From positions 381,747 through 445,746 of the forward strand of contig NW_005434608.1 in the NCBI RefSeq assembly GCF_000315625.1: 64,000 nt of DNA, in the 5' to 3' direction. The notes under the pieces were generated by a model. The model saw nothing but the letters and a program-made list of their open reading frames with translations, did no database searches and was not told where the DNA came from. Source of the stretch: Guillardia theta CCMP2712 (Eukaryota > Protista > Cryptophyta). Shown one piece after another: positions 15,071 to 61,627 of the stretch (the stretch's first letter is position 1; every line of letters starts with the position of its first letter). The translations under genes were made by a program, and so were the position numbers.

Positions 15071-18000
15071 TGTAAGAACTCAGGTTCTGACAAACCTCTC
15101 AGAAGTTCTTTCAGACGCGATAAGTTCAAGGGATGCGTCTAATCAGGTTGTGAACCAAGTGAAGCCTGCAGGTCCAAGCTAGTGGGCTGGAGCTTAGTCT
15201 GTGACTTAGAAGATCCGGTTGGTTGGAGCCTGGGGAAGCTGAGGCGACGCCGGAGGAATCAAGAGGCGCCGGCTGTCGAAGAGGCAGCACTCGTACAGTG
15301 GTGGAAGTAAGGCGGTGGTGTGTGAAGGGAAGCTGTTTGGTTGGTCTTGCTGCTACGAGTGTTGGGAATAAAGTGCTGGGGATTGTTGGGAAGTTGATCT
15401 GAGTTATCTGAGGTGTTTGGTTGGCTGTGAAAGTCATTGGTGTCTTCGTGCGCACATCATCTGTGAGTCTTGGTCTTTGGACTTATCAGTCAGCTGTTGA
15501 GCTGTTCTACTAGTCATTCATCTGTGCACAGACTCTAGGAGTCAGGAATTGATTCCAATACAAAAAGAAAATTTTCTTTTTGTATTCACGAACAAAGGAA
15601 TACAAAAAGACTCTACGATAAGATTCCAAGGACAACGAGTTAAAGGGCTCTTGGTCTTTGTGCGTCGAATTGACAACGAGTTTGAAGGCTCTTTAAGGCT
15701 CCTGGTTGTTGTACTGTACGCTGTTACTCATTTTTTTTTGGAACGGTATTGGTAACTCCAAGTTGACGATCATGAGCATGCCAGATCTGCAAGAGGAGTT
15801 GAAACGAAGCCATGGTGATGTTCAGGTCGACAAGCTGAAGCATGGGAAGGTTACCTCCAAGGAAAAACTCGAGGACCTGTTCCTTCCTTTCTCAGGTGCC
15901 ATGAGTCGTTTTCGTCCGAATCTTGGGGCTTGTTTCTTAAAACTGTTGGACTTGTTTCCGATTGACGAGACTGGATCGTTTGTTGGAGAATTTCATGAAA
16001 TGTGGGAGTCGTCTCCAGAAGGTCTAGAAAAATTCTCTTCGCTGGAGTGGAAGATTCAGGTCACGGCGTTGTTTCTGCATGCAGGGTACATTTGGAAGAA
16101 TGGGAAGAAATTCAAGGATGCTCTTGAGAAGTTTAAGAAGTTGCGAGGAAAATTCGAGGAGGCAATCGCAGCCAGCGAGGATGTGATTGATGGTGCTTCA
16201 GAGGATGGAGAGATGGGTAATCCACTCGATACATCTGTGGTTTTCTCTCCACACAAGTACCAGATATCACCGAGGTTGTTCAGATCCTCAGCTGATCGAC
16301 AGGAGGTGGAAGTCTTATTTGAAGATATTGCTGAGGTACTTGTAAGCACGAACAGTTATTTTCGAGTGAAGCTAAAGGATGATTTCGACATAGAGTGGCA
16401 GATGTCAGGAGGAGGCAACTATCCTTTGGCATTCTTCAAAACTTTGGCACTGGTACGCTGGAATGTAAAGCAACGAAGTGGAGCTGAGCTTATCGAGCTT
16501 ACTGAGGACGAAGGGAGAGATCAGCTCAGAGCGCTAGCGAAACAGCCACTTGAGTCTGAAGAAGCCTTCTGGAGGAACGTGGACAAAATCAAGCTACTGT
16601 TTAAGAATCTCAAGGATAGTATTCAAGGTGTTGTGGGGGCACACCAAAGGATGGGGCCGTTAGAGATCCAGATCGCTGAACTCTTGCATGCCAGGTGTAA
16701 AGAATCGACTTGTGAATCGTTGCAGTCATTGGCATTGAATAGAGAATTGCGAAATTGGAAGAAGAGTAATATGAGACCAGAAAAGATTTCTCTCGACGAA
16801 ATATTCCACTGGGGGCGCATCTTAAAAACTAGAAGCAAGACGACTACGACCGTGACGCCCGCGATGGATGCGAAGGGAGACGTGTCAGTGGTGAATATCA
16901 CTGTGGCAAGTGAACCGATGGTACCGAATGAACCGCAGGCTGTCGGAGAAGTTGCAGTGGGCAAGAAGAGATCCTCGGGGTCAGGCGAAAATAGTGGTCA
17001 AGCGGATTCGGGAGAGCATCGGTTGGGGGATGATACTGAATATATGCCTGACGGTGCAATGTCTCCAGTTCCTCCAGCAGGCAGAAGAACACGGAGGGAT
17101 TTCAAGGCGGAGCGAGGGGTCTTGGAAAGCAAATATGTCAATCGAGATGTCGAAGTTCTTGTAAATGGTCAAGTAGAGCAAGGCAAAATTTTGCAGATGG
17201 TTTTCAAGGAGGGAAAGTTTCTCGCGCGGATTGTTTTCCCAACTCTCGACAATTACTGGGTGTTACGGTCTGTCACTGATCCTGACATCAAGTTTTTGGA
17301 ACAAACCGAACAGAAGGCAATGGTGGTGCTTACAAGTGGGGAGACAATATCAGAGGCCTGCATGTTAGCAGATTATTACTCGTGCAGCTTTCCACCGAAC
17401 GTCTTTGGTGATATGACCGACCATACCAAGGTTTTTAAACCCTGTCTTGATCGTGCAGCGGATGAGATCATGGATGTTGTCGAAGCTACAGTTGGGGGTT
17501 CGCCTGAAGTGGTTGTACTTTCCCAGCACAAGAAATTTCCACAGTATCTGCAAGTTACACATATTGTGCAGGGGTCGACTGAATCTGAAGAGATCTTGTA
17601 TGTTTGGGACAGGGGGGAAGACAGGACAAGCCTTCAGCCAGCATCCCAGCGTTTTGTTCCAGTATGGAGGGATGAGATGTACAAAACTCGTTTACAGCAT
17701 GTCGATCCTGTGTCATCTGCCCCACAGGTCAGTGCTAATGTGGACCCTACTTTCAGGGATACGCGTCTTCTTGTGGCGAATCTAGCGTTGGTCTCTCCCG
17801 TATGGGACGCGGTGGAGCTGGCATCTGACCTGTTATCTCTGATGTCTTCCGACCGTGACAATCCAGCTGCAATGCCTGAGAATCAGGCAGATTACGTGAT
17901 GACAGCGGCTTGCGATGCAGGAAATGTGGAGAACGAAAGTAGTTTTGACAAGTTACCAGATCCCAAGACAAGGTCAGAGATGTTACGTCGTCCGGATCGG

Positions 18001-18785
18001 CATCTTTGGGAGCAGGCTGAAAAGGAGGAAATTGCGAAGATCGAAAGTCGTGGGGTCTGGGAAGTTGTTACGCGTGATCAGAAAAACAGGGAGTCAAATC
18101 ATTCCGTCCTTGCTCGCGCCTTGTGGGTGTATGCTTCAAAACGAGACTTGAAGGGCAAGATCTTGAAACGAAAGGGGCGGCTAGTTATCATGGGCAACTT
18201 ACTTCCTTCATCTGAAGAATTGTTTGCACCGACTACATCGTTGGACAATATCCGGCTCTTGCTGAGCATCGCGGCAGGCAACCGTTGGAGAATCACATTC
18301 AGGGATATCTCTGCTGCTTTCTTGTATGGTGACTTGGAGGTTCCTGTGTATTTGATTCCTCCAGATATCATGAGTCTTCCTCCTGAGTGCCTCCTCAAAG
18401 TCTTGAAGTCGCTCTATGGACTTCGCATTGCACCAAGGAGATGGTATCTTAAGTTCACGCAGGTGTTGAAGACGGTGGGAGCAAGTGGGATAGGACATGA
18501 TGAGATCATCTACCGATACTCCAACTGTGCGGGGGACGTCTTGCTTCTGACTGTCTTCGTGGATGACTTACTCATTGTCTCTCAAACTGAAGCAGTTAAG
18601 ATTGAGTTTCTTGAGAAGCTCAACACAGTATTCGACTTTTCGGGGAGTGAGGCAACAGGTACCTTCTTGGGCATTAAAATAGAACAGAATGACGATCAGG
18701 GTCGGATAACTTTGTCACAACAGCATTTCATTGAAAAGATTGTTGAACGCTTTGAAATCGTTGCCAGAGGTGTCAAAACTCCTCC
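15071..18785 (+). mobile_element. Ty1/copia LTR retrotransposon, 3'-truncated (no RNase H or 3' LTR visible)
   Basis: Intronless 1052-aa ORF with copia reverse transcriptase motifs. The upstream non-coding block begins TGTAAG at about 15071 (putative LTR start, uncertain). Recognisable copia similarity stops at ...VKTP (about 18783). Confidence 0.85.
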
Positions 18786-18864
18786 ACTGACGCGCAGCCC
18801 CAAGCTTGTCGCGTCACACCCTCAACTTCTACGCATCCCAGCACCGCAACTTGATTCGATTTGA
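15772..18864 (+). CDS. copia gag-pol polyprotein (gag-like N-terminus + RVT_2 reverse transcriptase)
   Basis: W..A...E......GVW, WVYASKRD...KGRLV..G, FAPT, DISAAFLYGDL, LKSLYGLRIAPRRWY, VFVDDLL, FLGIKI, LSQQHFI. Confidence 0.9.
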   Translation: MSMPDLQEELKRSHGDVQVDKLKHGKVTSKEKLEDLFLPFSGAMSRFRPNLGACFLKLLDLFPIDETGSFVGEFHEMWESSPEGLEKFSSLEWKIQVTALFLHAGYIWKNGKKFKDALEKFKKLRGKFEEAIAASEDVIDGASEDGEMGNPLDTSVVFSPHKYQISPRLFRSSADRQEVEVLFEDIAEVLVSTNSYFRVKLKDDFDIEWQMSGGGNYPLAFFKTLALVRWNVKQRSGAELIELTEDEGRDQLRALAKQPLESEEAFWRNVDKIKLLFKNLKDSIQGVVGAHQRMGPLEIQIAELLHARCKESTCESLQSLALNRELRNWKKSNMRPEKISLDEIFHWGRILKTRSKTTTTVTPAMDAKGDVSVVNITVASEPMVPNEPQAVGEVAVGKKRSSGSGENSGQADSGEHRLGDDTEYMPDGAMSPVPPAGRRTRRDFKAERGVLESKYVNRDVEVLVNGQVEQGKILQMVFKEGKFLARIVFPTLDNYWVLRSVTDPDIKFLEQTEQKAMVVLTSGETISEACMLADYYSCSFPPNVFGDMTDHTKVFKPCLDRAADEIMDVVEATVGGSPEVVVLSQHKKFPQYLQVTHIVQGSTESEEILYVWDRGEDRTSLQPASQRFVPVWRDEMYKTRLQHVDPVSSAPQVSANVDPTFRDTRLLVANLALVSPVWDAVELASDLLSLMSSDRDNPAAMPENQADYVMTAACDAGNVENESSFDKLPDPKTRSEMLRRPDRHLWEQAEKEEIAKIESRGVWEVVTRDQKNRESNHSVLARALWVYASKRDLKGKILKRKGRLVIMGNLLPSSEELFAPTTSLDNIRLLLSIAAGNRWRITFRDISAAFLYGDLEVPVYLIPPDIMSLPPECLLKVLKSLYGLRIAPRRWYLKFTQVLKTVGASGIGHDEIIYRYSNCAGDVLLLTVFVDDLLIVSQTEAVKIEFLEKLNTVFDFSGSEATGTFLGIKIEQNDDQGRITLSQQHFIEKIVERFEIVARGVKTPPLTRSPKLVASHPQLLRIPAPQLDSI

Positions 18865-21800
18865 TGATCTCGCGCACTACAGTGAAGTTCCACTTCCCCT
18901 CAGCAACGCCCTCGACGTCCCACTCTGACGTTCCCCTCTCCTGCGACACACCCACATCCTCCCCCGTATTCCTCCTCGATCTTTTGCTCTGCACCAGGGA
19001 CCGTGGGCTAGTCTCCTCGTCGAGACGCCGAGGAGGAGAGAGGCTCTTCTGATGCCGCTTGAGCTCGAGCTCTGTGACTGGAGCCTTCTTGGGCTGCTCA
19101 ACAACAGCAGGCTCAGCGTCCGACTCAATCTTGCTGGTGAGGAGGAGCGGGGTGGACTGTGAGGTGACCTTGCCCCTCCTCGGGGAGATCGGGCGAATGG
19201 GGGAGTTGCTGTCCGTCGATGTCAAGTTGGTTGCAGAGCTGTTCCTGGGCAAACGCTGAGAGGGTCGACCTCTAGGCCTTCCCTTGCTGTTTCGGAGCGA
19301 TGAGAAGAAGTCGTGGACATCGTCTTCGTTCACATTGCTGACCCGCAAAGGAAGCTGGAAGTTGAATGTTGTACCCTGGTAGCAAGTCAGGTCTCCAATG
19401 TCTGCTATCCCCTAGCCCTCACTTCCCATCTCCCCTTCCTCCTCTTTTCTTCCTCCTCCTTCCTTGCCCCCAAAGACAGGACGATCATCTCACCTTCCCA
19501 ACTTCAGACTCGCACTGAATGTCACCTCCCATCAGGAGCGCGAGCTTTTTGCAAACGCTCAACCCCAGAGCTCCGTCCTTAAGAAGCTCCACACTGGTAG
19601 AAATGTCAGAGGCAAGCTGAGCTGACGCGGGAGAAGAAAGGGAGGAAGGTAAACGAGCAAGGGAGAAAGCAGCGAGAGTTAGTCTGCACTCACTCTCCGT
19701 CCACGAGGTTGTTCGAGTTATTGTGATTGCCAAAGATCATCTTCAGCTGCTCCGAGTCCATACCAGGGCCATCGTCAATGACCAACATGCTGCAGTTGAA
19801 GCAGACGCGGCCCTTGCTGTCCACAAACGTCTCGGAGCCAGTCCTGGCCTCCACACGAATTTTCTCGATCTCTTCGTGATTGAGAGAGTGGGAGATGATC
19901 TTGGTCAAGACCTGCTGGATGCGGAAGGGATCGCCGACCACGTTGAAGAACTGGAGCTTCGAGGTGTCGATGGAGACGGTGTCGCTCTCCTCGGAGAAAT
20001 GTGAGCCAAGCGCTTCGAAGAGAAGGCGCAGGTCAAACGTCAGCTCTTCAAGCTCTACTCCTCTGCAAGCATCAAGTGAGCGCCCTTAACGTCTGCAGCC
20101 CCTCTAATCACAGCCCTCCCTCCTCTCTTGCAAGCTCTTTCTCTCCCTCACCCTATGTTCTTTCACTCCTGCTCTTTCTCCTCTCTCACCCCATGTTGAT
20201 CTTCGCGATGTCCAAGATGTCATCGATGATCTTCCGCAGCTGGTTCGCTCTCTCCCACGTCCCTTCCACCAGCGCGAACTGCTCGTCATCGATGTCCGTG
20301 TCTTGTAAGAAGGAGATGTTGCCCATGATGCCATTCAGAGGGTTTCTGATCTCATGGCACAGGAACTGCAGCTGCTCCATCTTTGCCTGCATGACGTGTG
20401 AGCCTATCATCTAGGCGAGAGAGTGTCAAGCAAAGAACCTCATTGGCCGCCTCTTCTGCCAACTTGATCTTCTTCATGAGCTCCTTCTCTTGCCTCGTGG
20501 TCACGTCTTGCGCGAAGAAGACCACTCCCTCGACTGTGTCGTTGGTGGTGCGACGAGCTCCGGCGCTGACCAGCAGGTTCACAACCCCCTTGTTTCGCTT
20601 CTTGAAGATGACGTCGATGCAAGCGACTTCACAAAATTTCATCGCATTCACTCGTTGCTCGTTGAGCTGCAAGGGATGACGTCAGCACAAGACACGCAAG
20701 GAACGCCGTTGTCCATCGCACCTTTTGACACATCTCGTTGGAGAAAACTTCCAGGTCGTTGCCAAATATTTCCCCGACAAGGCTCTTGCCGATCACTTCC
20801 TCGCGCTTCAACATGGTAATCTCCGCCATCTTCGAGTTCCACTCATTCACTTTGCCATCGTTCGTGCAGCAGAACACAGGGACGGCACACTGTGCGATCA
20901 ACCTCTCATACTCAGCCGCTACCGACTGAGAAAAGTCCAAAGATCAGTCTTTTCTCGGTGAACGAATTCGGTGCAGACCAACCTTGCATCTCTCAAGAAC
21001 AATCACTGACTCGGTGATGTCTTGACCAACAAACGTGACAGACGCTGCAAAGCCGCAGACTTTCTTGAGCACGTTTGCGTTCAGGAGGAGGTGAACGGTC
21101 TGAGAGAACAATCAAGAAAACAAAAGGATGAAGCATAATTGCATGCAGACCTCTGACTTCTGCTTGTTGCTGAACATCTCAAGATGAAAAGGGTCTGTAT
21201 CAATTCCTGCATTGGTATCGTCTAGGATGCTTGACAACACAGTTCGGAACGACGCAGGGCAGAACTCCTTCAGCTCCTTTCCACATGCTTCTTCCTTTCG
21301 CAACGAGGAGAGTTGTTCCATCTTGGCGTTCCACTGCAAGCATGTGAACTCAGAAAAGACAGCAGACATGATCAATCCTGCACAGACCTGAATGATCACA
21401 CCCGAACGATCTATGCTGAAGATTGGAGCATTCGCAGCGGAGATGATGTTAGACAGCTGGACAAATGTGAGATGGAAATCATGCTTGCACGTAAATCACC
21501 TCTGTAGCCATACGAAAGCTTTCAGTTCTGCTCTTCACCCGCTGCTCATGAATTCTCATGCTCATGTCTTGGGTCAACTCTTGCCCTGTTGCCCACGACA
21601 AGATGTCGTTGACAAACTTCCCGAGATCCTGCACATCCTCCAGGTCGCTCTGAGACCAGTCACGGCAGCCCGCCTCAGCGGACTTGTCATGCTCGATCTG
21701 TCTAAACCAGAGCAGCTCGCCTCCCATCTTGAGGGGAAGGCAGAGCATTCCACATGCGCACAAGGGATCACAATCATACCCCGAAATGATGTCGCGCACA

Positions 21801-23119
21801 TCCCTGCTGCTCGAAAGCTTCCTGTCACTGTCGCTGTAAATCTCATCCACGAGCGCCTTGATGAAGTTCACATCCGGAGTCCTTCCGATGGTGTGGACCT
21901 CGCCGCTTGGCATGACAACAGCTCCTCCTGAGGTGTGGGGGACCACGGAGAGGAGGGAAGTCTCCTGAGATGCCACCAGCCCCTTGAGCGTGTCCACTCC
22001 TTCAAGGTTCTGCATCAAGTCCAGCAAATCTCCATGGATGTTGAGTAGCTTTGACAACCTTGCCTGCCGCTTCACCTCCATCAAGGAGTCCAGCTTGGAG
22101 AAGAAAGCCTGGCTCACGAAGTCGCACACAACTCGGTCATTGATCGACATGTGCTTAGGTTGCGAATAGTTATATCCGATCATGAGGCCCCAATCCCCAA
22201 CTCTCTTGGTCCTGATGGACATCACAAAGAACGACCTGATGCCCATCGAGAGGAAATATTCCTTGGTGAAAGGATCAGTTGCCAGGTAGCTAGACTTGAG
22301 GATAGAAATCTGCGATTTGCTCAATGGGCCCAGGGCTTCCTTCACGAAGCACATGGGCTCGTAGTCAGCGTTGAGATCACGATCGATGCAGAGATTCTTA
22401 AAGCCGCACACTTGGAGCAACTGCTTGCTGGCACTCTGGAACAGGAACGTGGAGTCTTGGACGGACGAAGCCTTGTCCTCTGCGACAGGGATGAGGAAAC
22501 CATACTCACTTTCAGAGGTAGAGAGTTTGTACAGCACAATGCGCTCGTAGCCCAAGATAGAACGCATCGTTGAGACAACAGTGCTGTAGAGGCTCTTGAG
22601 ATCGCGCTCGGCGAACACGTTTTCAATGGTTTCCCGAAAGCTGATCGTCAACTCAATCGGAGACTCTTCTTCTCGGGGCTCGATGTCAAGGATGACGTGG
22701 TCGTTCTCGTACACGAAGTGAATGTACGATTCCACGCCGCCCTTGAAAGTCACGTTGAAGGTGCCTGTAGACATCGAGTCTTTCTTCGCTTGCAACTCCG
22801 GCCAGGGCAGATTCGAGTCCAAGATTAGCTCGGACCAAGTTTTCCCGAGAATGTCATTGACAGCCCGGTTGATGATGCGATCCACGTTCTTACTGCAGCC
22901 AACCACCTTGCCAGTAGAGAGGTTTGCTACCAAGACTGCGCCCCCCGGCTGCACTCGATGGCAGGAAGGTTCACCGTAATATGGGATTTGGATCGGAGCT
23001 CCCAAATCAGAGCGGGGGACATGACTCAAGTTGTTGCTGCTCCTTGTCCTACCTCGGCTTCGCATAAGCCTGGAGCTTATGATCTGATCCATCTCGTAGT
23101 ACCTACGCCCAGCACCCAT
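18773..23119 (-). CDS. phytochrome-like histidine kinase (PAS-GAF-PHY-PAS-PAS-HisKA-HATPase), canonical bilin-binding motifs absent
   Basis: VQPGGAVL..CSKN (nPAS); RSILGYERIVLYK and WGLMIGY (GAF); LLWFR...W (PHY); two PAS repeats (QWNAKMEQLS, EWNSKMAEIT, FFAQDVT); H-box FLCHEIRNPLNGI; GDPFRIQQVL, DDGPGM, LGLSVCKKLALLMGGDI. Confidence 0.88.
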
Positions 23120-35269: not shown

Positions 35270-38200
35270 CTATGTGACCTCCTCGTCCGTGATGAAGTGG
35301 CTACCACCAGCACATTGGTAGCCTCCATCAACCTTGATCCACTCAAAGTCCATCGGGCACCTTCCGAGCGCCTTGATCCTCTCCTGCCTCGCCTCCTCCT
35401 CCGCAGTCTTCTGTTGCCCTTGCTGAAGGATGAGACGCCTGACCTGCTTCAAGAAAGGAAGCCTGCATCCTTCTAACCCGTACCGCACCTTGTCCTTGTC
35501 CTGAAACCCTCCTTGTCTCATCACATGATCCACTACACGATCGTCGATGGATCGACTGAGCATGGCCTCCAGGTCATCGAGGGAGTAGCCCAACTCCTTG
35601 CAAGCTTGCTCCAGGAGGGGAGATAGCAGACTGGGATCTGCCGAAGAGCTGTCTTGCTTTCTTGTGTTGAGAAGGACTTTCTTGATGTTTCTGTTCCTCA
35701 CAGGTTTAGCTGCTGCAGGAGGAGTCGCCATGGGAGCTTCGAGGACATTTCCTTGTGATGTTGAAGATGCTGGGTGAGCAGGCGATCTCAGCCATGAGCT
35801 GTGTTGGCTCGGCTCAGCAGGAAATGATTCTTCCATTCGAGTCTCCTTGCGCTCGTTCTTGACGTCCTCCTCCATCTCCTTCTCCGTGCCAACCTGACTT
35901 CTTCGTTGAAAGATCTCTGAGAACGTTTTCTCGATGTCCTCACTCGTGTACGATCCATCCACACTTTGACTTGGGGTAGTTGATGCTTCGCGCAGGCGAT
36001 AAGCACGGTGGCGGTACAGCCCCTGTACAAGCAGTCAGACGTTCGAGCGTGAGATGGGAGACAATACCGTGAGGACGATCTCCACCACGTCTCGAGCTGA
36101 AGCCCATCCTTGTAACTTGGTCAGCCTCTCGTACTTCTGCAGGAGAAGATCGTGGCATTTCGATGAAATCTCGATCCCAGCCCTCTTCACTTCCTCGATC
36201 GTAGCATTCAAAGCTTGACTGGCCGTCCATGCGTCAAATGTCAACCTGTACTTGTCAAAGCGACTTCGGAAACCAGGGTTCACACTCTTGAACAGCTTAT
36301 CCATCTCTTCTTCATAACCTGCAAGGATCACCAGCAGATTTCCCTTGAACTCCTCTTCGGTCATCAACGATATCATCGTCTCTACAGCCTCCATCGCGTA
36401 CGATGACGTGTAAGTCTCGTTGCTGTGCTTCGAGTTGCAGAGGCTGTACGCCTCATCCACGAACAAGATTCCTCCTTTGGCCCGGCTCATCGCCTTTCTC
36501 ACGATCGTCTTGGTCTCTCCCACATACGTCCCTTGCAGAGATGTGCCGCTGACGACGATGACATCATCAGAGGGGAGCACGTGCAGCTTCTTGAACAGCC
36601 TCCCCATCCGTCTCGCTACTGTCGTCTTCCCTGTCCCCGGTGGTCCAACAAAGACCATGTGGCTGTCAGCCAGCACGTCTGCTGGATCCCGCTCCTCTCT
36701 CTCCGCGATCGAGACCATGGCGATGATCTGCTCCACCATAGTCTGCACGTTGGAGATGTTGTAGAGGCCGGCAAAGATGGCATCCACCGACTCGTCGTCG
36801 TTCTCTATCTCAAAGTCAGCCAATGTGAGGACGTTCCACTCCATGGCTGATCCAGCAGCCGTTGAGAGCCGTCTGGCCTTGTTGACCTGCAGTGACTCGC
36901 GTTACACTGGGTAACGATCTCAAAGCAGGAGCTCGCCTTGGCCTTGTTCACCAGAGAGGCAACAGTCGCTGCGTTCCTGGTCCCGTGCAGTCAGCGATCA
37001 AGGCAGGAAGAGGCGGCTGGGCGAGTGGTACCCGAAGTTAGGGAGCCTCCTCCGCTGCCAGAGAAAGCGAGAGATGGTAGGGATGTCTTCAATGTCGGCG
37101 AACTTGAGGCCCTCGTCCTTGACCTTCATGGTCAGGACCTGCTGCATCTCGTACTCGTTGAGGTCCTCAAAAAGAAGCCCGAAGTCATCAAAGTTGAATC
37201 TTCGCTTCAGTCCCGCGTTGTTCTCAAACATGTCCTTCATCTCTTGTTTGTAACCTGCCAACATACTTCATCGATGTAGATAAGCGAACACTTGTCTCAC
37301 CCGCAAGAATGACTGCAGACCGGCATGTGATGAAGCGAACGCAGCTGCGAGTCAGCAAATGACAGGAGCGCACCACAACAATTCAACCTGCGATGTCGCT
37401 GCCTGCTTCACCATCCAGCTTCTCCACCAGGGTGTCCAGCACGTTCCCACCATATTGGTTGGCCTTGCGGTTGGGGTCGAGGATGTACGCTTCATCGATG
37501 AAGAGCACCTTACCTCGCGCCTCCTCTATCACGTTCTTGGTGATAGTCGCCGCCGATCCTTCAGCGTTGCCTGTCAGGTCGGAGGGAGTGACTTGGATCA
37601 GGTCCCCTACGGAAAGGAGGGAACATTCTTTGAGGAGCTGACCGTACAGTCGAGCTACTGTTGTCTTCCCGGTCCCTGGGTTCCCATAGAAGATTCGATG
37701 CAAGGAGATGCTTTCAGGTTTCCCTCCCAGCAGCTCGTTCTGGTACGAAATGGCGCACAACTCCACCAGTTTGGTCATCTGCTCCTTGACATTCTTCAGC
37801 CCGATCATCTTGTTCAGTTGCGCTAGTGTCTTGTTGTCTTCTACTGAAGGCTTCGTCCCCAGGGCGTCTTGTGTGGTTATTGTTCGATACTCCTCCACCC
37901 TGACCGGTTTGTTCGCCAGCTTCAAACTTCCCAATCGTTCCATCTGATTGTGTACAATGTTCTCCACGATCTTTTCCACGTCCAGCGCATTTCCGAATCC
38001 CACCTTTGGTCGATTGCCAACGAGCCTTCTGGCCAGGGTTTGAGAGAGGTCGATCTTACACAGATGCTTCGGCTCCAAGTGAAGGCCTCTTTCCCTTAGA
38101 AACCGAATGAACAGGCGCTGGAGTTGACGCTCGCTGAAGTCAGGCAGCTCGATGGTGTGGATGATGGAGGTGAAGGGAATGAGATGCGTCGACAGCCTCT

Positions 38201-41200
38201 CTCTTACCAGCATGCGGTCCCCGATGATGATGAAGTTTGTGTTGACTCGGTGACGACGGATGAAGGCGAAAAAGCTGTCCAAGACTTGATTCGACTCGTT
38301 GGGCTGCTGATCTTTGGGCCTCGGGATCAACTGGTCCACGTCATCAAGGACGAAGCATCCTCCGATCGCCTGCGTCATCAACGTCTCCAGTCTTTGCGCC
38401 GGGTCCTTCTCCTTGAGAACGTCGAAGGTGCTCGCCTCAACAAACTTCGCCTCCTCGGATGCAAGCTGACACATGGAGCGGCCCAACAGCTTCCCAGCTG
38501 TAGTCTTCCCGGTCCCTCGGTTGCCGATGAGGAGGAGGCACTGAGAAGCATGAATGTGGTGCTTGATGGGCGAGTCCTTGTTGAGAAGCGCCTAACGCCA
38601 GCAGGTCACTCGTACGACTTGTCGCTGCCTCCGTTACCTTCTTGACATGCACCAGGGCATATCGTTTGAGCTCCGACAAGCCTTCTAGACCTATCAGCCT
38701 GCGAGGTAGCGTTAGATCCACAGGGAGCAGCGCAAGCATATTGTGCGCTTACTGGTCCAGCGACTCTGAAGTGAAGCCGTATGCAGTCTTGGCAGCTATC
38801 CATTCTTTCTCTTCTTGGGATGTCTTCTTCTCAAACAGCCGCAGGTCAGCAGTCAGAGGCTGCTCCTTGAGCTTTCTCAAGTTGTCTTGCTTGACAAGCT
38901 CATAGGTATCCGTGTGAACATTCAGGTGATGAAGAACCATCAGCGCACAAGCACTCTGAAGCTCTTCAGGCATGGTCAGATCGCTTGTTAGCAAAAAGTG
39001 GAGATAGTAGACGTAAAAGAAGTAGGGATCGATCACTATAGTCTTGTGCCTGATGACATCTTGGATGTAAATGTCGAGCTGCTTCTCGGCCTCGTCGATG
39101 CTGAATCCTCTTTCAATCAGCGAGCAGGCATAATAAATTCGAGCATCCATGTTTGTTTTGCACCCATCTCTGCACTTCTCCATGAACGGACGGTTGATGG
39201 CGTCTTGTGATGTGAGACGCAAAACATCTTCCCGTAATGACAAGATCTCTTCTGACAGCATCGGTTCAGCTCGAGAGAGAATGCTGCAAATAATCTTGGC
39301 CCTGTCATGATCTTTCAATCTCATGAAGAAATTTCCTTGCCGGATGGCATGATGTACATCTCTTTCTCTTCCGCCTGCCAGAAATATTCCATCTTCGAAC
39401 ATAGCTACACTCTGAAAGAAATGGTTTTCAGTCCAGATGTTTGCTCCAGCTTTTATGAGAGCATGTAACGACTTTTTCAACCCGGCCAGGCTCAAGTAGT
39501 GAGCTATAGTATTCCCAAATCGATCGCGCAGGTTCAGCATGTCAGCCATTGTCTTGATGACTCTGGTCATTTGACTTCCATCGTATTCTTCTCTCAACTG
39601 AGAATCTTCTGCTTCCATCGACTTCTGTATCGAATTGACTATCGCGTTGTTCTTCCGTTCGCTGCTGATCGCTCCGAAAGTTTGCATTCCTCTGCTCACG
39701 AGATGATTCTGCTCGGGCTGACGTTGGACCGACTTGTTCTCTCCCTGACTCACTGGCAGCACATCGAAGGCAGGAAAGGGAGGAAAGTCAGCAAATCTCG
39801 GTCGAGATCGAGTCGGAAGGGAAACAAGGCGAGAAGCGTCGACTGACTGAGTCGCTCCATTGATCTCCACCTTCCTCTCACTAGCTTCAAGCGTGTGCTC
39901 CTCCACCGAAAGTTTTCCCACTGAAAACTCAGAAAAGCTTTCGCACTGCCCTGTCAAACCCTGAGACAGAACAAGCACATACATGTTCTTCGATTCGGGC
40001 AATCTGTCCTGATTGGCATTCTTAGTCTGCACTCGTCTTGCGAGATCTCTGTCAAGACTGCAACAGCTGATGGCCTTCTTGTATTCATCGCAGGTAATGT
40101 AATCATTACACGCCGGCAAGGAATCAAAGATCTGGCTCACTTGATCCTGGTGGATTCTTTGCTGCAGGCTCTGGAAAAGAACTTCAGAGAGTACTCGTCC
40201 TTTGCGCTCTTTGTCAAGTCTGTTAAATTCGTAGTTGAGATCTGGAACATGAAAGTCAGGGCAGTTCTCTCGTGCCTCATCACACTGCACGCAAGAAGCT
40301 TGTTTCAAACTTGACACTCGTGAGCACTGCTTGCATCGATAAAAGGTTCGCAAGTTTCCACACATCTTGCAGCCTTTCATTCCCCGATTTCCAGAATATC
40401 CGCAGGAATCACACTTCCAAGTAGCGACATGTTTGCTGATGATCATTTGAGTCATCTTGTCGTAGTCATCGTGTCCCATCAAGATCGGACGAGAGCGAGC
40501 AAGCTTGAGTTTCATTCTCTTGCGATGCCACTCGATGAAGTACGCAAGCGCTTTTTCATCCGAAACAGTCTTCAACTCCCACAGTCGTGACCATGCTTGA
40601 AGCGTGACAAGACGAGTGATTTTCTCGACGTCGATCTCGCTGCTGACACCAAGTTTTGACAATGCTTCTATGAGCGACTTCTCATCGTCCTCGTCAAATT
40701 GAGCAGCATGGGAAGATTTGCACAAAGCGCTGGAGGGAAGTAAGCAAGGTCGTGAGCTTTTAAAGTCCATCCAGACGACTTGTACATTTCTCTGAATACT
40801 TTCGCGCATCACTCCGGCATGTACTACAACCCCAACAGCATTCTTGCCTACCTTGACAGTTTCTGGACTTCCCAATTGGACCACATCTCCTCGCCGAAAA
40901 ACGTTAGCATCTTCAGGTCTGAGATCTTTCCCATCGAAGAACTCTATCCTAAACGGATCTTCTTCTGCATAGACTGCGACGTTTTTCATTCCTTCTCCAT
41001 CAACATTGCCCAAGGAACATACGACAACTCCGACTTTTTGCTGAGTAGCAGTGCCTAAGACTGTAGAGTTCCCCTTATACTGGTGATCTAGTTGTACTCT
41101 GGTTCCGCCCTGCAAATAATCACACGGCACCAACAATATCGCCAGACCTCTGATTTTGCAGTTGATGCCGCCTGAATCATGCACATGTATTCTTACAACT

Positions 41201-42535
41201 TTTGCATCGCTGTTCGTAAGCATTGTGAAACTTTTGAGATCGTCAGACTTCGAAATCGGCAGCTTCAGTTTTCCCTCAGATCGAAGCTTTGATTGCACTT
41301 TCTTGGATGTCAAGACCTCAATTTGCTTCGGGCAATAACTATCATCGCTACCTTTAACAAACATTTGAACAGACTTGATGAGGTAGCCTTCGGCAATGTG
41401 AGCCTCAACCCAGTGCTCGCCAGAACGACCATCCGATTGCCAATATGTGGACTCATCTTGATCAAAGAGCCGGTCAAGTGTTGACGACTTACTTGAACTC
41501 TTCATGTCAATGACTCCTGCAGGACCTGAACAAGCAACGTGGAAAGTCAGAAAAGCCGGAGCCCGGCATTTGCAGCAATGTTATGTACAAACGTGGAAAT
41601 GAAAGCATCTGCATTCCCACTTAAAACTCCCATCCTGCTTGACTCACCACTAAAGCTTGAATCGTCGCTAGCGCTTGATTCTCCGCTAGAGCTTGATTCT
41701 CCGCTAGAGCTTGATTCCTCTGAGCCCTTGCTAGAGCTTGAGTCTGTGCTCGATTTATCTGTGCTCGATTTATCTGTGCTCGATTTATCTGTGCTCGATT
41801 TATCTGTGCTCGGGTTGTCTCCAGGCGAGATTGGCACATCTTCTGCTGGCATCCATCCAAACCTTGTTCCATCCGCAAAACTCAGATCCGATGCGGAGTA
41901 GGTGCAAATAGCGCCACTGAAACCAAATCAAACACGTCTCACACGCACAAACACGCGCACTTCTTTAACGACGCCACTTTGACCTGATAGTCTTGAGAAG
42001 CTCCTTGGACTTCAAGCAAGTGACGGCTGGTCTCTAGCACTATGCCATATCGATCTTCCTGTGAGAATCCCAGGCAGTGGTGAAAGTCTGCAGCACAGAA
42101 GGAAAGCTCAGCATCAACAGGTACTGATGACATGCGCTTCTTTGAACTCAGAACCACGAGGTCGCCAGCCTGAAAATCATCGAAATTTTCCAGAACCGTG
42201 TCTCCGACTGCTTCGTCCTCGACCTTAACATCGGATTCTTGCACAGAGCTTCTTGATTGCAAGAATTCAAGAAATGCTTCATCGGTCTGTTTGATAGATT
42301 CTTTGTTCAGAAACCACGTGATCTCGTCCTCCACAAACGTTAAACTCTGTTCTTCTGGATTACAGCCTTGAAAGCATTTTGCTAATTGCGTGGAGGTTGT
42401 CATGAAGCCGGCATTGGATTTCTTGACAAACAAGGTGGTGAGGTCGAGCTCGACTTCACCCTCGTTGCCGTCAAACTTGAAGTCTGCGATCTCGTCCAGC
42501 CGGAGCGACTCATGCCTCGACAGCGACGGCGGCAT
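35270..42535 (-). CDS. large multidomain protein: DOC/APC10 + SH3-like repeats + RanBP2-type zinc fingers + EF-hand-like + ankyrin + three SpoVK/CbbX-type AAA+ modules + Cys/His C-terminus
   Basis: DOC: LFDQDESTYWQSDG..HWV...DDSYCPK...GGINCKIRGL. Zinc fingers: WKCDSC...CKMC and YRCKQC...CVQC. Ankyrin: DRFGNTIAHYL...LIKAGANIW. Walker A GNRGTGKT, GNPGTGKT, GPPGTGKT; Walker B VLDDVD, FIDEAY, FVDEAY. Tail CPMDFEW...GYQCAGGSH. The ORFs are separated by short GT-AG introns. Confidence 0.85.
41655..41812. repeat. coding tandem repeats: 15-bp (TDKSS)n and 18-bp (ESSSSG)n
   Basis: CTCGATTTATCTGTG x4 and GCTTGATTCTCCGCTAGA x2-3, encoding a Ser-rich linker in the AAA+ gene. Confidence 0.9.
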
Positions 42536-42649
42536 GTCGGACCCCAGCAAAGCCGACGAGGTACAAAACGTGTCGAGTTGCGAAAAGAGGTTTTTTCATA
42601 GGAACAGAACGTGTCAAGAGGAACAGAACGTGTCATAGAGCGACTCGGC
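42536..42649. promoter_or_regulatory. putative compact bidirectional promoter with three AACGTGTC motifs
   Basis: 114 bp between divergent ATGs (42535 -, 42650 +). Direct repeat GGAACAGAACGTGTCA at 42601 and 42620, plus AAAACGTGTC at 42565. Confidence 0.55.
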
Positions 42650-45600
42650 ATGGGTTGCGGCGGAAGCGTCCATGCCACCTCCAGCCCGTCAGAGGTTCCG
42701 ATCGACGTGGCCACGAGTGAGTTTCCGCTGCATGCTAGGTTCCAAAGAGAGACCGCGTCCATCGCTGCAGCTGACATGAGCACGCTCAAGTCTACCAATC
42801 CAGCAATCTACCTGTGCAAGGGGCCTGATCGAAGCCTCCTGCACAAGCTGGAGATGAAGATGCGGTCGTCAGGGTTTTATGTCCTCGACATAGCAAACGT
42901 TCCCAAGGACGTGTTTTTGAGTCACTCGTGGCAGAACAAACTTGATGGGACCAGCACTCATGAACAAGTCAAACGAATTAGTATCGAACTAGAGAAGCGA
43001 GGATGGTCGACTTTCTTGGATGAGAATGACATGAAGCCTAATCTGAAATCTTGCATGGCTCAGGCGATAGAGCAGTCATATGTCGTGATCATCTTCTTGA
43101 CCAAGAGTTACATGGACAAGGTGAACAACGATGACGTCAACGACAATGTCTGCTTCGAGTATTCAGCGACTATCAGCCAAAAAGGCTCGGGAAGAATGTT
43201 TATCCCTGTCATTCTTGAAGAATTCGAAGTGAGAAAAGGGCTGCAGTTTCCCAAGGACTCGAAGGCATGGTATGGGCCCGTAGGAGCTGAGATCGGGAAG
43301 AGGAGGATGTACCTTGATTTCCTGAATTCCACAATGTTCGAGACCAACATGAATCGACTTGATCAAGCTCTGAAGGAGCTTGTTCCCATCAAGCACTCTC
43401 CAGCTGCCAAGATGTATAACACGATATCATCAGGAATCATGAGAAGCGATGTGGTCGTGATCTTTGTTGGCAAAGGGACCCTGCAATGTAGCACTGTGTC
43501 TGAGGAGTACATGGTGGCAGTCAGCATCCAGAGACCAGTGTTGCTGGTGATGTATGACAGAGATGTTTCGGTAGAAGAATGTACCCGCATGTTTCCTTCC
43601 AATCATGTTCTGAATCTGTCGGATAGCTCTTTGCAAGTGGGGGATCAGGGCTGGTCGGAAGCAGTTTATGCGAAAATTCTGCAGATCTATGAGCAAACGA
43701 ATGAAATTGACACGAATGCCACGTCAGCCGGGAGGTCTCAAGACCAATCAGAGCCAACAAGTAAACGAGATGTCGATGCAACAAGGTCTTTTTCAGTGGA
43801 AGAAGTTGTGGGATGTATTGGGGGCCGAATAGTTGCGTCAAGAATCGAGTTCAATGATTCTCATGTCATAGCACAAGGTGCGTGTGGTAGAGTTTATCGT
43901 GGAACACTGCAATCTATAGGCAATGTAGCTGTAAAAGTTCTCTCACCCATTAATGGCAAACCACCTAGCAAAGAGCAATATGATCAGCTTGTTAGAGAAG
44001 CAAAGATTCTCAGGGTAGTGCGATCGCCTTTTTTTGTTCAAATGCTCGGAGCCTGCAACATAGACGACGATAATGCTGACTCGACAGCAATTTTGGATTT
44101 CCGTTCAATCGTTTTCACCTTGTACGAGAACGGAACACTTCATCAGCATCTCTTCGATGCAAACTATAGCAAACTCCCTTGGAAGCTTCGACTGCAGATC
44201 TTGTGGCAAGGTCTTGCTACACTTGAGAGCTTTTGAAGCGACTGACTTGTATACAGCTGCCCGTGGACTGGTAGAGTTGCATAATCTTGGGGTTTATCAT
44301 CTAGATTTCAAGCCGGCGAATATCCTTCTTGATGAGAAGATGAACGCAAAGATTGGTGACTTCGGGCTCTCCAAGGTGATTCACAACCAGGCTGATACCA
44401 TGGACTCCCGACTGCTGCTTGCCATGTCAAGAACCCGCCATAGTGCAGCAGGCACAGGTCAAATCTTGCTTTGAAAAGCATTTTGCATACGTTGATGACT
44501 GGTGGATGTTGCAGACGGATACATGTGTCCCATTTACGTACAAACCAAGAGGATTTCACAGTACATCGATATCTACAGCTTCGGAGTGAGTTTGATGCAA
44601 ATCGTCCGCAAGGAGCATGCCGTCACTGGCGATCAAAAGCTGCTCACAGAGAAAGTTGCAGATGACGTTCGCACGAATGATTTGAGCCAGTGGAGGTATG
44701 ATCGGGAAGCAGACTGGGACGCCGGAACAGCGAGTGATATCACGTTGTTTGCGTTGCAATGTACAGACCTGAAGGAGAGCGAAAGACCTTCAGTCGAACA
44801 AATCCACATTCAACTTTCGTCCGCCCTCGGAGTGCATCAGCGCATCGATGACACACCATACCTGTTCATCCGAGTGAAGTTTGAAGGGCATCGGGAGCTA
44901 AAGAAAGTGTGTGTTAGCATCAACGCGGACCTTGACAGCGTGAGGGAGAAGCTGAGAAGTCAATTCAGACTCAACTGGAGGTCGTGTGAAAGTATCACGT
45001 TGAAAGGAAGGCGCTTGTCGGAACTGTTCATAATCAGGGACATGATGTCTCCGGGGTTCGACCCGAGCTTTGACGTCAAGACGGACACTCTTTATTTCCA
45101 GTCAAGCGTGCGGGCTGAACCAGAGCAAGTGGAGGAGAACAAGTCGAAGCAAGCAACGTCCATGAGCTCCAACAAGTCCATCAAGGCAAAGCATCGTCCC
45201 ATCCTAAGTGCATTGGCGATCGCTGCTGCTCCAGGTTCACCCCAGGAAATCAAAGAAACCATTGCGCCTTCTCTAGATATTCTATCGAGTGAAGGAATCA
45301 ACCTTAAAGATGTTTACGAGAAGATCTCACAAGGTAGCAGAGATGCTGAGAAATTGGCCCAAGGCTTATCAAAGAAAGAAAAATTGTACGTCATGCATAT
45401 TTTGGAGCTGCTGAAAAACAAAAATGCAAGAAAGATAGCAAAGCTTGCAGCTCGAGACATGCGCTCAGCTTTGTCTCAATCGGATTCATCGTCGGGTTCA
45501 CCGTCAAGCTCATCGTCAGAATCTGAATCAGAAAAGAAGGATAGTGGACAGGAGAAAACGAAGAAGAAAAAGAAGTATCAGATAGTCTATGAACGTTTCA

Positions 45601-48600
45601 AATCCTTCTGGGAGCGACTTGCCAAGATCGCGGCCCTCTCCCCCCCTCCCGAGGACCTTCTCCTCAAGCTGGAGCTGGACTACTTCGACAAGTCTGTCAT
45701 CCAAGACCTCGAGGCCGCCAACTGGTCCCTCCGAGAAGCCATCCAGCTCGTCTTGATCGAGGGCAAGCGAGACCTCGACGAGGTGGCTGGCGACGTCGAC
45801 GACAACAGCAAGGCGAAGCTTGGGCTGTTCTTGAAGGAAGTCGAGGCGCAGGAGGCTCGCCTGAGGGCCGCAGGAGAGTCGGAGCTGTTCAAGCCCTCCC
45901 AGCGCCCCTCCTCCTCTACCGAGAACAAGCTGCTGGCCAAGTACGACCGCGTGCTGCAGACCTTGGCGTGGCTGCTGGTCTCGCCGGACGCGGAGGGGAA
46001 GCAGAGCAAGGCAGCGGCGCTCCGAGAGCTCGTCGAGCCTCATCTCCTCCAGGATCGCCTCGACATCTTGACGGCGGCAGACGCGCTCGCCGTGGGCACG
46101 AGGAGCAAGGAAGCTCTCACCGCCGGCAAGTCGGAGGCTGAAGCTCTGCTCATCGACAGGCTGCTCGAGCATGTCCACGCGGGGGTCAATGACCTCTCCT
46201 CGCGGCGAGCGAAGCACAACCTCGACGTGCTGGAGGCTCTGGGCAAGAAGGAAGACGCCTGGAGCGAGCAGTCGGCTTTGGGTATCAAGCAAGCGAAGAA
46301 GCACGACCTGCTATGGAAGCGCTTTGTGCAGCTGGTGCTGAAGCCGTCAGAAGCGAGCAAGTCACGGTATCGGATCTGCTCTGGGAGCCAAGAGGACGAG
46401 ATGAAGTGTATCTTTGATGACATCTTACCTCGCATGGAGAAGTGTGGGTGGGACATTCGGATCCCTCTGATCAGGTTTCGAGAGGGTGAAACTGACAGAA
46501 CTCGGTTTCTTGCAACAGTGACGGACAAGAATGATTTGCAACTGCTGGAGTATGTGTTTGATAACTACATTGCCAGTCATCTACCTCAAAGCTCTAGCTC
46601 GGTCTTTCACTGTGACAGTAGCATTGCATGGTTCTCTCTGCAACAATTCACTCTTCTGTCCTGTGTTGCTCAGCTAAGCAGCCAGGACTTGTTTGACAGG
46701 AGTGATTTCAGGCTGGCTCATCAAACTCTCCATGAAGTTCGTCGTATGTATATGGATCAGCTTTTACGTGCTACAGCAGACAACTATACCTCCTTGATCC
46801 CCAAAGTTGAGAAATTCTGGGATGGAGTGCGTGATGAAAATGTCTTGATCTCAGATCTTGACGCTGACGAGGCAGCACTGATGAACATCCTTCTTCGATT
46901 GCATACTGCTTTCTCCCAGAGCTCAGCCGACAGACAGGCGTCAATCAATGCGATTCTAAAAGATCTCCTGCCCAAGAATGAAATCGAGGTTTGTTTGTGT
47001 AGCTGATACGAATATCAAAGCATATGAAGCTCCTGTTGGGCAGGTGTTGATCGTTGGGTGGGCGTGTGTAGATGATTCGAGAGACCTGAAAGTTAAACAA
47101 AACTTGCGGGACAGGATAATATTTTACATCCTCAATCAAGCGACCTCGGACTCATTCCCTGAAGAGCTTGAGGTATATGAGACAAAGTCTCAACCCCTAG
47201 CTTGACTGCGTTGATTGTCGACAGGATGCTTTGGATCAACTGCTAGCCGTCCATGTTGTTACTGAAGCTTCAATGTTGTCGTCGCAAAGGTTTTTCATGA
47301 ATTCGCTCATTTGTCCTTGTCAGGAATAGACTAGATGGCAATCATGCTAAGTTTTTGCGGCAAGTCATGATATGCATAAAAAACATCAGCCCATCTTTGC
47401 TCAAGGTAAGAAAGCATGATACAGATCTCCGAACACATAGCAGTGGTGCAGGAAGCTGTGGACAACAGCACTCAAGTTGCGATCAAAACCAACATGTTGA
47501 CGGAGAGTGCATATGAAAAGACTTTTCGCTCGAAAGAAGACGCTTTTCGTCGTGCTGCTCAGGTGATTTGGCTACTGAGGTGTTCCACCCTCAAGATCAC
47601 ATGGAGCTGAACACATTGCGACAGCTCTGTGATGCAGATTGCGCCGAGAGATATAAGACAGAGAGGATGTTTCCAGGTGCGTGTACTTTCATTCACCTCA
47701 CGACAGTCATGTTTCAACATCAGGCACATTGGAGAGGGAGCGAGAACTGATGATTTCTCACTTCTTTGAGGTGAGGAGATGCTAGCATAGATTTAACCAT
47801 GTCGGCACTGAGTTTCAACATCTGCAGCCGATGAAGGAAAAGTTAGGGTCTGGCATCACAGACGCGATTAAGAAGATGTGGAATGGAACGCTATCTCTCT
47901 CTAAACTCTGCGAAGGTCAGAACATACGGGCCTTGCTCCTTCTTGCCACCTGAACCTGCGCTTTCAGATCTTAAGGATACCAAACACGTTGGGGCGAGAT
48001 TCAGCATTTGGAAAACCATCAAATTCACAAAACAATATGGTTTGAAAGATTCAACATGTGCAGATCCAGATAAAGGCGAGATCATCTACTACAACGACGA
48101 GACAGAACAAGAAGAGGATGAGGGGAATGATATTTGGACCCGATTCAAATCCTTCTGGGAGCGACTGGCCAAGATCGCGGCCCTCTCCCCCCCTCCCGAG
48201 GACCTTCTCCTCAAGCTGGAGCTGGACTACTTCGACAAGTCTGTCATCCAAGACCTCGAGGCCGCCAACTGGTCCCTCCGAGAAGCCATCCAGCTCGTCT
48301 TGATCGAGGGCAAGCGAGACCTCGACGAGGTGGCTGGCGACGTCGACGACAACAGCAAGGCGAAGCTCGGGCTGTTCTTGAAGGAAGTCGAGGCGCAGGA
48401 GGCTCGCCTGAGGGCCGCAGGAGAGTCGGAGCTGTTCAAGCCCTCCCAGCGCCCCTCCTCCTCTACCGAGAACAAGCTGCTGGCCAAGTACGACCGCGTG
48501 CTGCAGACCTTGGCGTGGCTGCTGGTCTCGCCGGACGCGGAGGGGAAGCAGAGCAAGGCAGCGGCGCTCCGAGAGCTCGTCGAGCCTCATCTCCTCCAGG

Positions 48601-49142
48601 ATCGCCTCGACATCTTGACGGCGGCAGACGCGCTCGCCGTGGGCACGAGGAGCAAGGAAGCTCTCACCGCCGGCAAGTCGGAGGCTGAAGCTCTGCTCAT
48701 CGACAGGCTGCTCGAGCATGTCCACGCGGGGGTCAATGACCTCTCCTCGCGGCGAGCGAAGCACAACCTCGACGTGCTGGAGGCTCTGGGCAAGAAGGAA
48801 GACGCCTGGAGCGAGCAGTCGGCTTTGGGTATCAGGCAAGCGAAGAAGCACGACCTGCTATGGAAGCGCTTTGTGCAGCTGGTGCTGAAGCCGTCAGAAG
48901 CGAGCAAGTCGCGGTATCGGATCTGCTCTGGGAGCCAAGAGGACGAGATGAGGTGTATCTTTGATGACATCTTACCTCGCATGGAGCAAGACGGGTGGGA
49001 CATTCGGATCCCTCTGATCAGGTTTCGTGATGGGAAAAGAACGAAAGATGATTTGATTCAGGGCATTGAAGACCCTCTTGATGTACAACTGCTGGAGTAT
49101 GTGTTTGATACATACTTTGCAACCTCTGTCTGCGAGAATTGA
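42650..49142 (+). CDS. TIR-TIR - IRAK/Pelle-like Ser/Thr kinase - PB1/ubiquitin-like - helical repeat protein, multi-exon
   Basis: MGCGGS N-terminus. [11 protein letters not shown]...FLDE...[19 protein letters not shown]...CFEY. Kinase [60 protein letters not shown]. Introns at about 44211-44256 and 44457-44514 join the ORFs; exons continue to 49142. Confidence 0.87.
45597..46480 (+). repeat. copy 1 of an approximately 884-bp near-identical intragenic duplication
   Basis: Matches 48144-49027 at a constant offset of 2547 with only about 10 substitutions seen by eye. Confidence 0.97.
48144..49027 (+). repeat. copy 2 of the approximately 884-bp intragenic duplication
   Basis: Matches 45597-46480. 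Confidence 0.97.

Positions 49143-49587: not shown

Positions 49588-61627
<12,040 letters not shown>

Follow-up and report, generated by a model that had tools for sequence, protein, structure and literature searches.

The 64,000-nucleotide stretch of the Guillardia theta CCMP2712 genome analyzed here (the window; contig C66:381747-445746 of an 87.1-Mb assembly in 669 contigs) contains a TIR-kinase gene, which we call GtTIRK, and a triple-AAA+ gene, GtAAA, which diverge on opposite strands with their start codons 114 bp apart, as read from open reading frame (ORF) lists and a six-frame reading. The best explanation of this arrangement, to which we give a probability of about 65%, is that these are two intact, single-copy and unrelated genes that became divergent neighbors by chance and share a 114-bp promoter region in a gene-dense nuclear genome. 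A dedicated sensor/helper partnership between them is not indicated. A sequence-only reading of this DNA had proposed that they form one co-transcribed sensing and signaling unit, and we found no support for that proposal beyond adjacency: there is no paralogous pair, neither protein is a nucleotide-binding leucine-rich repeat receptor (NLR), the two genes differ in phylogenetic spread and close spacing recurs in a small random sample of the genome. Its description of two very large genes lying head-to-head at about 115 bp was accurate, as was its domain-level reading of both genes overall, and profile searches matched all of the families it named (TIR_2, Pkinase, ANAPC10, AAA and AAA_lid_6). 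The range that it gave, 35270-49142, does hold two real genes, but positions 47007-49142 lie outside the TIR-kinase gene and contain a separate ORF.

Both genes have multiple exons separated by GT-AG introns of 44-122 nt, and intact spliced models were built using cryptophyte transcript proteins as a guide; both genes have their nearest relatives in the cryptophytes Hanusia phi and Teleaulax amphioxeia. The minus-strand gene has its first ATG at 42535, after an in-frame stop, and the plus-strand gene has its own at 42650. The locus consists of:

42650-47006, plus strand: GtTIRK, the TIR-TIR-kinase gene, 1417 amino acids, intact; exons 42650-44210, 44257-44457 and 44515-47006

42536-42649, no strand: divergent intergenic spacer, 114 bp, with AACGTGTC three times, at 42567, 42608 and 42627

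35270-42535, minus strand: GtAAA, the DOC/zinc-ribbon/ankyrin (ANK)-like/triple AAA+ gene, 2237 amino acids, intact; 10 exons, 42535-41961, 41916-41648, 41525-38753, 38698-38638, 38591-37388, 37312-37301, 37254-37032, 36976-36952, 36886-36068 and 36022-35270

Genome searches found each gene once, and where the sequence-only reading had looked to paralogous loci for the same pairing, no second pair of this type was found in the genome. About 20 other TIR loci are present; the two that were looked at (L002:616-4428 and L004:18-2939) encode Roc-COR-TIR proteins, in the order Roc, COR-A, (COR-B), TIR. At least 11 TIR_2 loci lie in stop-free frames of ~1200-1370 amino acids (contigs C150, C149, C23, C92, C184, C221, C228, C33 and others), and Roc-COR-TIR proteins look like the main TIR repertoire of this alga. 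The only other AAA_lid_6 locus lies at C3:774-778 kb, with the nearest TIR 240 kb away. This locus (C3:774.7-777.1 kb on the minus strand, L003:6763-9091) contains two overlapping 751-amino-acid ORFs in different frames, without a Pfam match. Sequence like that of the TIR-kinase is absent from the 150 best AAA relatives, and no TIR or kinase lies near a 37%-identical relative with Ank and four AAA modules on its contig of 491 kb. The environmental contig of a Teleaulax-like homologue (10.8 kb, the longest listed) begins inside the gene, so that the upstream neighbor is off the contig. GtAAA has homologues in both Teleaulax and Hanusia, whereas a word-based search found the TIR-kinase only in Hanusia. 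Furthermore, neither protein contains an NB-ARC, a NACHT core or a leucine-rich repeat (LRR), the only trace being sub-threshold NACHT/nSTAND3 matches over classical AAA modules, and Pfam found no LRR, WD or TPR sensor in either.

As a baseline for the spacing we took 20 arbitrary 10-kb pieces of the genome (200 kb) and considered non-overlapping ATG-initiated ORFs of at least 150 amino acids. Divergent neighbors were found 143, 259 and 453 bp apart, together with three overlapping pairs that are perhaps spurious; there was Pfam support for the pair at 453 bp and for one of the two ORFs at 259 bp. Because three such pairs occur in a sample of this size, short distances between divergent genes do not seem rare in this genome. 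The ORF-based baseline misses short first exons and therefore undercounts.

The spacer is not featureless, and it could co-regulate both genes, because it holds three copies of AACGTGTC. Their ACGTGTC cores fall within 61 bp, whereas the heptamer occurs at 0.086 per kb across 292 kb of the genome, and the 64-kb window as a whole has 6 copies of AACGTGTC versus 1.4 expected. The triple cluster is a candidate common promoter element, and shared regulation through a common promoter is possible. This leads to the alternative that the two genes are co-regulated and nothing more: a bidirectional promoter, bound by an ACGTGTC-binding factor, would induce them jointly, for example under stress, and the products would act in separate pathways. 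The density of the cores fits this idea, as does a spacer too short for two independent promoters. However, a 19-nt tandem repeat (42600-42640) contains two of the three copies. The cluster may therefore be recent, and the duplication that made them may have been a neutral event. In addition, the longer form of the motif, ACARAACGTGTCR, is not enriched genome-wide, with 8 matches versus 20 for a reversed control. We regard co-regulation of this kind as unlikely.

Several points weigh against chance neighborhood. The spacing baseline is crude, being ORF-based and made without annotation, and Pfam backs only part of its pairs. The three spacer copies make up 3/8 of all genome-wide copies of ACARAACGTGTCR. 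Both genes have Hanusia homologues, so that their co-occurrence is possible. Finally, what we suggest below for the two proteins (an enzymatically competent TIR, acylation, an active kinase and the formation of a ring) is in each case inferred from sequence.

GtTIRK ends at the stop codon at 47004-47006. Removal of its two GT-AG introns, 44211-44256 (46 nt) and 44458-44514 (57 nt), gives the 1417 codons, and the junction of the 46-nt intron reads RLQILWQ/AARGL (slash, junction), in agreement with RLQIAVQAARG in the Hanusia phi protein P0171. From N to C terminus, the MGCGGS acylation motif of the protein is followed by a TIR_2 domain, another TIR-like domain, a tyrosine kinase-like (TKL) kinase and a 730-amino-acid tail:

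42650-42670, plus strand: N-terminal MGCGGSV, a putative myristoylation site with Cys3 as a possible palmitoylation site, by sequence reading

42911-43231, plus strand: TIR domain 1 (TIR_2; Pfam E 2.8e-16, 60.5 bits, cut-off 28)

43340-43561, plus strand: TIR-like domain 2 (ThsB_TIR profile; Pfam E 7.8e-6, 26.7 bits, cut-off 21.2)

43856-44804, plus strand: protein kinase domain (Pfam Pkinase / PK_Tyr_Ser-Thr), split over three ORFs and interrupted by the two introns

44805-47006, plus strand: C-terminal tail of ~730 amino acids, helical, with a Ser/Lys-rich low-complexity stretch, family unmatched

N-myristoylation follows the pattern G-{EDRKHPFYW}-x2-[STAGCN]-{P}, and the N-terminus of GtTIRK fits this pattern. 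The TIR-like domain 2 is conserved in P0171. In TIR1, the motif DNVCFEY resembles DHVLMEW around Glu1141 of the G. theta TIR protein L1IYH1, a comparison made by eye only; BLAST left this stretch unaligned against one paralogous TIR, and a PDB sequence search with TIR1 gave no true match. L1IYH1, whose sequence and catalytic Glu position are given in the supplement of a preprint, makes cyclic ADP-ribose and depletes NAD+ (10.64898/2026.04.20.719644). It is a different protein from GtTIRK and of the Roc-COR-TIR kind, with the TIR at the C-terminus of 1337 amino acids as in the Roc-COR-TIR loci. The tables of the same preprint list the two-TIR G. theta entries L1JXD3, L1JCH1 and A0A6U6CBX1 (10.64898/2026.04.20.719644).

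The kinase retains the VAVK lysine, an HLD motif (non-RD), DFKPAN and DFG, and has CPIY where APE is usual. Many pattern-recognition kinases are non-RD. Searched alone, the N-lobe gave FERONIA, Pto and SYMRK as its best PDB matches, and the short catalytic exon gave GCN2 and Chk1. In the Hanusia homologue P0171 the N-lobe and catalytic loop are uninterrupted, and this contiguous kinase matched mostly lectin receptor-like kinases (lectin-RLK), SYMRK, Pto and CERK1 in the PDB (E 1e-20 to 1e-14), then CTR1/Raf and RIPK2; the single top row was an EGFR construct, and IRAK itself was absent among the best 60 matches. As the best matches of the Hanusia kinase are plant RLK/Pelle kinases, we assign the GtTIRK kinase, on sequence similarity, to the TKL group, nearest the RLK/Pelle family. 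This agrees with the sequence-only reading, which had described TIR domains joined to an IRAK/Pelle-like kinase, and the TIR domains are in tandem.

No Death, LRR or other ectodomain family was found in GtTIRK by Pfam, and its tail had no Pfam match. A homologue search with the kinase C-lobe and tail found none, and an Atlas search with the kinase tail returned nothing usable. Searches with the N-terminal part, by single sequence and by profile, recovered only P0171, a Hanusia phi transcript fragment 38% identical to GtTIRK over TIR2, linker and kinase; a metagenome scan for TIR-kinase relatives with flanks found none.

Taken together, GtTIRK would most likely be a membrane-tethered signal transducer, with N-terminal acylation as its anchor. 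Its tandem TIRs would oligomerize on a signal, and TIR1, in which the Glu motif is apparently kept, may cleave NAD+. Oligomerization would bring the RLK/Pelle-like non-RD kinase domains together and so allow trans-activation, in which case GtTIRK would unite the roles of TIR adaptor and IRAK-type kinase in a single polypeptide.

TIR-kinase fusions are known from choanoflagellates, where "Kinase TIRs" and "Kinase TLRs" were an architecture unique to that group in the data set of Richter et al. 2018 (PMC6040629). Like GtTIRK, the Kinase TIRs place a TIR and a protein kinase in one cytoplasmic polypeptide, and it has been proposed that they bypass the recruitment of a kinase by adaptors (PMC6040629). 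However, they have the kinase domain followed by the TIR, whereas GtTIRK is ordered TIR-TIR-kinase, has an acylation motif and a 730-amino-acid tail, and belongs to an unrelated lineage. Because Kinase TIRs were reported as unique to choanoflagellates, GtTIRK is most likely an independent fusion. It would be a second joining of a TIR to an IRAK-type kinase, outside of choanoflagellates, and bears on the repeated rise of Toll-like signaling logic. GtTIRK also has TIRs and a TKL kinase in common with MyD88/TLR and IRAK/Pelle signaling and with plant RLK/Pelle kinases, its nearest solved relatives being lectin-RLK, SYMRK, Pto, CERK1 and FERONIA. Unlike IRAK/Pelle and RLK proteins, it has no death domain, transmembrane segment, ectodomain or LRR, and its DFKPAN motif is more generically Ser/Thr-like.

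The model of GtAAA was guided by Teleaulax P0151 (2817 amino acids, a complete transcript ORF) and Hanusia P0002, and contains nine GT-AG introns. GtAAA is collinear with P0151 (36.8% identical in 1370 alignment columns, with two further blocks at the N-terminus) and is 61-63% identical to P0002. A 12-nt microexon at 37312-37301 on the minus strand, TCATTCTTGCGG, supplies VILA of the DIAVILAGY motif in AAA module 2, exactly as in P0151; the introns around it are as short as 44-46 nt. The recognizable parts of the protein are:

41299-41499, minus strand: core of the DOC (APC10-like) domain (Pfam ANAPC10, 29.5 bits, cut-off 21, E 6.8e-7)

40282-40419, minus strand: two CxxC...CxxC zinc ribbons, residues 651-696, from a regular-expression search

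39421-39549, minus strand: single ankyrin-like motif G-x-T-x-A-H...GA, conserved in the closest homologues

37866-38591, minus strand: AAA+ module 1 and lid; Walker A GNRGTGKT, degenerate Walker B CFVLDD

36952-37865, minus strand: AAA+ module 2, spanning the microexon; Walker A GNPGTGKT, Walker B VLFIDE

36068-36886, minus strand: AAA+ module 3; Walker A GPPGTGKT, Walker B ILFVDE

35273-35626, minus strand: C-terminal module of short helices, one long helix and a three-stranded knuckle, C-P-x-x-F-x-W...GG-Y-x-C-x-GG-S-H

The protein begins with a small barrel-like region followed by a Ser-rich stretch. The coding sequence of this stretch in exon 2, at 41637-41812 on the minus strand, contains two minisatellites (15 nt x 4.7 at 100% identity, and 18 nt x 4.5), which translate into STDKS and SSSGES repeats. 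The genome has two other DOC loci. After the DOC domain come two more stretches that appear barrel-like by eye, and then four CxxC pairs, of which the first ribbon fits a RanBP2-like pattern; the Pfam family DZR matched over the ribbons with E 0.0023, below its cut-off. In an alignment of the ankyrin-like motif (A3), G44, H49 and L63 are invariant, and the homologue P0004 has an Ank_2 match at residues 404-474, inside the stretch 380-660 that is aligned in A3. Pfam found no Ank family in GtAAA itself at E <= 1, and a fold model of the ANK-like and pre-AAA region was unusable, with a predicted local distance difference test (pLDDT) score of 49.

The Walker A motifs of the three AAA modules are at residues 1249, 1529 and 1795, and Walker B ends in DD in module 1 and in DE in modules 2 and 3. 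The AAA family scored 65-66 bits in each of two AAA-bearing ORFs and AAA_lid_6 scored 25.7 bits (cut-off 24.3). GtAAA has the AAA core, the AAA_lid_6 and the Walker A and B motifs of the CbbX/SpoVK clade of AAA+ proteins. By eye, and with CbbX in mind, we take GTYVGET in module 3 to resemble a pore loop. At the C-terminus, C90, G102, C105, G108 and H110 are invariant in the alignment of the module (A2), whose AlphaFold model has a pLDDT of 89; Foldseek found no match to it among PDB structures, and an Atlas search with the AAA tail gave nothing usable. Of the parts that had been read from the sequence, the DOC domain, the triple AAA+ array and the conserved Cys/His tail stand. The zinc fingers are present as CxxC pairs with a sub-threshold DZR match, but the ankyrin region comes down to a single motif that Pfam does not match.

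A full HMMER search with AAA modules 1-2 returned 16,043 relatives of the AAA part. In many of them 3-7 modules stand in tandem, and the best 150 were examined for the tail. The Cys/His knuckle pattern is present in 11 of these 150 and a sequence match to the tail (E <= 0.001) in 14, among them the amoeba-like protist Amoeboradix (P0147) and giants of 3200-3800 amino acids. One such giant, P0022, ends in the knuckle CPxGFxW..GGWRCxGGSH and clusters at 90% identity with P0170 (KAK3240587.1, 4442 amino acids), a protein of the green alga Cymbomonas in which a superfamily 1 (SF1) helicase (AAA_11/AAA_12) precedes the AAA array. In places where GtAAA has other parts, Teleaulax P0151 carries ClpS and matches MIB_HERC2 weakly. 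GtAAA is a member of a pan-eukaryotic family of multi-module AAA proteins. As far as we found, no function has been described for the family that combines tandem CbbX-type AAA modules with the knuckle, and no fold of the knuckle has been solved.

The sequence-only reading had likened the C-terminal part of GtAAA to NFX1/ZNFX1-like proteins. This likeness was borne out in so far as the knuckle recurs in giants that join an SF1 helicase to the AAA array, which we take to be ZNFX1-like, but Pfam found neither an SF1 helicase (AAA_11/AAA_12) nor NFX1-type zinc fingers in any piece of GtAAA. Thus GtAAA shares with the giants of the Cymbomonas KAK3240587.1 type the tandem CbbX-type AAA array and, as seen in P0022, the knuckle; in contrast to them, its N-terminal half is made up of DOC, zinc-ribbon and ANK-like parts. 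With CbbX, the red-type Rubisco activase, and SpoVK it has in common the AAA plus AAA_lid_6 arrangement, CbbX-like Walker motifs and ILAGY, but unlike CbbX it carries three tandem modules within 2237 amino acids, along with the accessory parts and the Cys/His tail. With its well-defined spliced structure, GtAAA exemplifies a eukaryotic family that is very large and widespread.

GtAAA would most likely be an ATP-driven protein remodeler of the CbbX/SpoVK clade. Two chains could form a six-module ring, in which module 1, whose DD Walker B gives it a regulatory look, would be regulatory and modules 2 and 3 hydrolytic, and the choice of clients would fall to the DOC, zinc-ribbon and ANK-like parts. 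GtAAA has a DOC domain and its Teleaulax homologue has ClpS; therefore both carry recognition-type modules of the degron/ubiquitin system, and the accessory domains of GtAAA point to protein turnover.

We next weigh the idea that the locus is a single innate-immunity unit, in which the TIR-kinase signals, the AAA+ protein is sensor, helper or executor and one bidirectional promoter serves both, as in plant NLR pairs. The head-to-head layout with 114 bp between start codons, the clustered triple ACGTGTC in the spacer and the Hanusia homologues of both genes are consistent with this. So are the ability of TIR domains of this alga to consume NAD+, seen with a different TIR protein (preprint 10.64898/2026.04.20.719644), and the fusion of the AAA and tail module to SF1-helicase giants in other lineages. 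However, neither protein has the NB-ARC, NACHT core or LRR of an NLR; no paralogous pair exists and the only other AAA_lid_6 locus is far from a TIR; 0/150 of the best AAA relatives have a TIR or kinase sequence like that of GtTIRK, and the relative on the 491-kb contig has no TIR neighbor. Moreover, the AAA gene is present in Teleaulax and the TIR-kinase was found only in Hanusia, close divergent pairs are apparently not rare, and the DOC domain, with ClpS in the homologue, suggests protein turnover rather than pathogen sensing. The likeness to RPS4/RRS1 and RGA4/RGA5 is limited to divergent orientation with a very short common upstream region: unlike in those pairs, no NLR and no integrated decoy is involved, and the pairing is not repeated among paralogues. 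We consider such a unit improbable. Slightly less probable again is a co-regulated two-gene defense module of cryptophytes, in which the triple-ACGTGTC bidirectional promoter would drive both genes and TIR nucleotide signals or phosphorylation would switch on the AAA+ remodeler, or the reverse; a secondary alga would then have paired immunity independent of NLRs. The paired-immunity reading is thus possible but unsupported, with adjacency as its present basis, and the locus is real and moderately interesting.

It is very improbable that the architecture is an artefact of decay or mis-assembly in one gene or both. In favor of this, 1-nt deletions are seen at 44029 and 44112 in a DNA run, only 2 RNA reads of one raw RNA run were placed on 5.9 kb (41401-47300) and the reading frame shifts repeatedly within the kinase and AAA regions. 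However, we take both deletions as read errors because they fall in T homopolymers in low-depth contigs from 2011, each frame change is a GT-AG intron that restores residues conserved in Hanusia or Teleaulax transcripts (the 12-nt microexon included), and the resulting frames are open over 1417 and 2237 codons.

Two chance neighbors remain the preferred reading, and the segment downstream of GtTIRK contains a further element:

47883-49142, plus strand: separate 419-amino-acid ORF, a partial tandem duplicate of the kinase tail with a 98.6%-identical core

Within it, 48141-49037 is a 98.6% identical copy of 45594-46491, placed 2.5 kb downstream and set between diverged ORF ends, and DNA depth is doubled over 45538-46522 in one DNA run (X1). 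This ORF is not an exon of GtTIRK, which stops at 47004-47006. The duplicate could be a recent segmental copy, a product of gene conversion or an assembly issue. A third fragment, with 231 identical nt, is found on contig C127:55069-55299.

The rest of the window contains a copia element, genes of phytochrome-like and WD40 type, and VPS13; the genes that flank GtTIRK and GtAAA are housekeeping genes, a point against a dedicated pair. Three of these neighbors are:

15706-18864, plus strand: copia-type reverse transcriptase ORF (RVT_2)

21479-23119, minus strand: phytochrome-like gene (PAS_2/GAF/PHY)

52501-60105, plus strand: VPS13-family gene, >2500 amino acids in one open frame

At the start of the window, positions 230-1401 are a 15-nt tandem array (CTCCTTCTACTTCAT) of 78 copies with 92% matches, which gives rise to a strong GC/AT skew and to overlapping ORFs in three frames.

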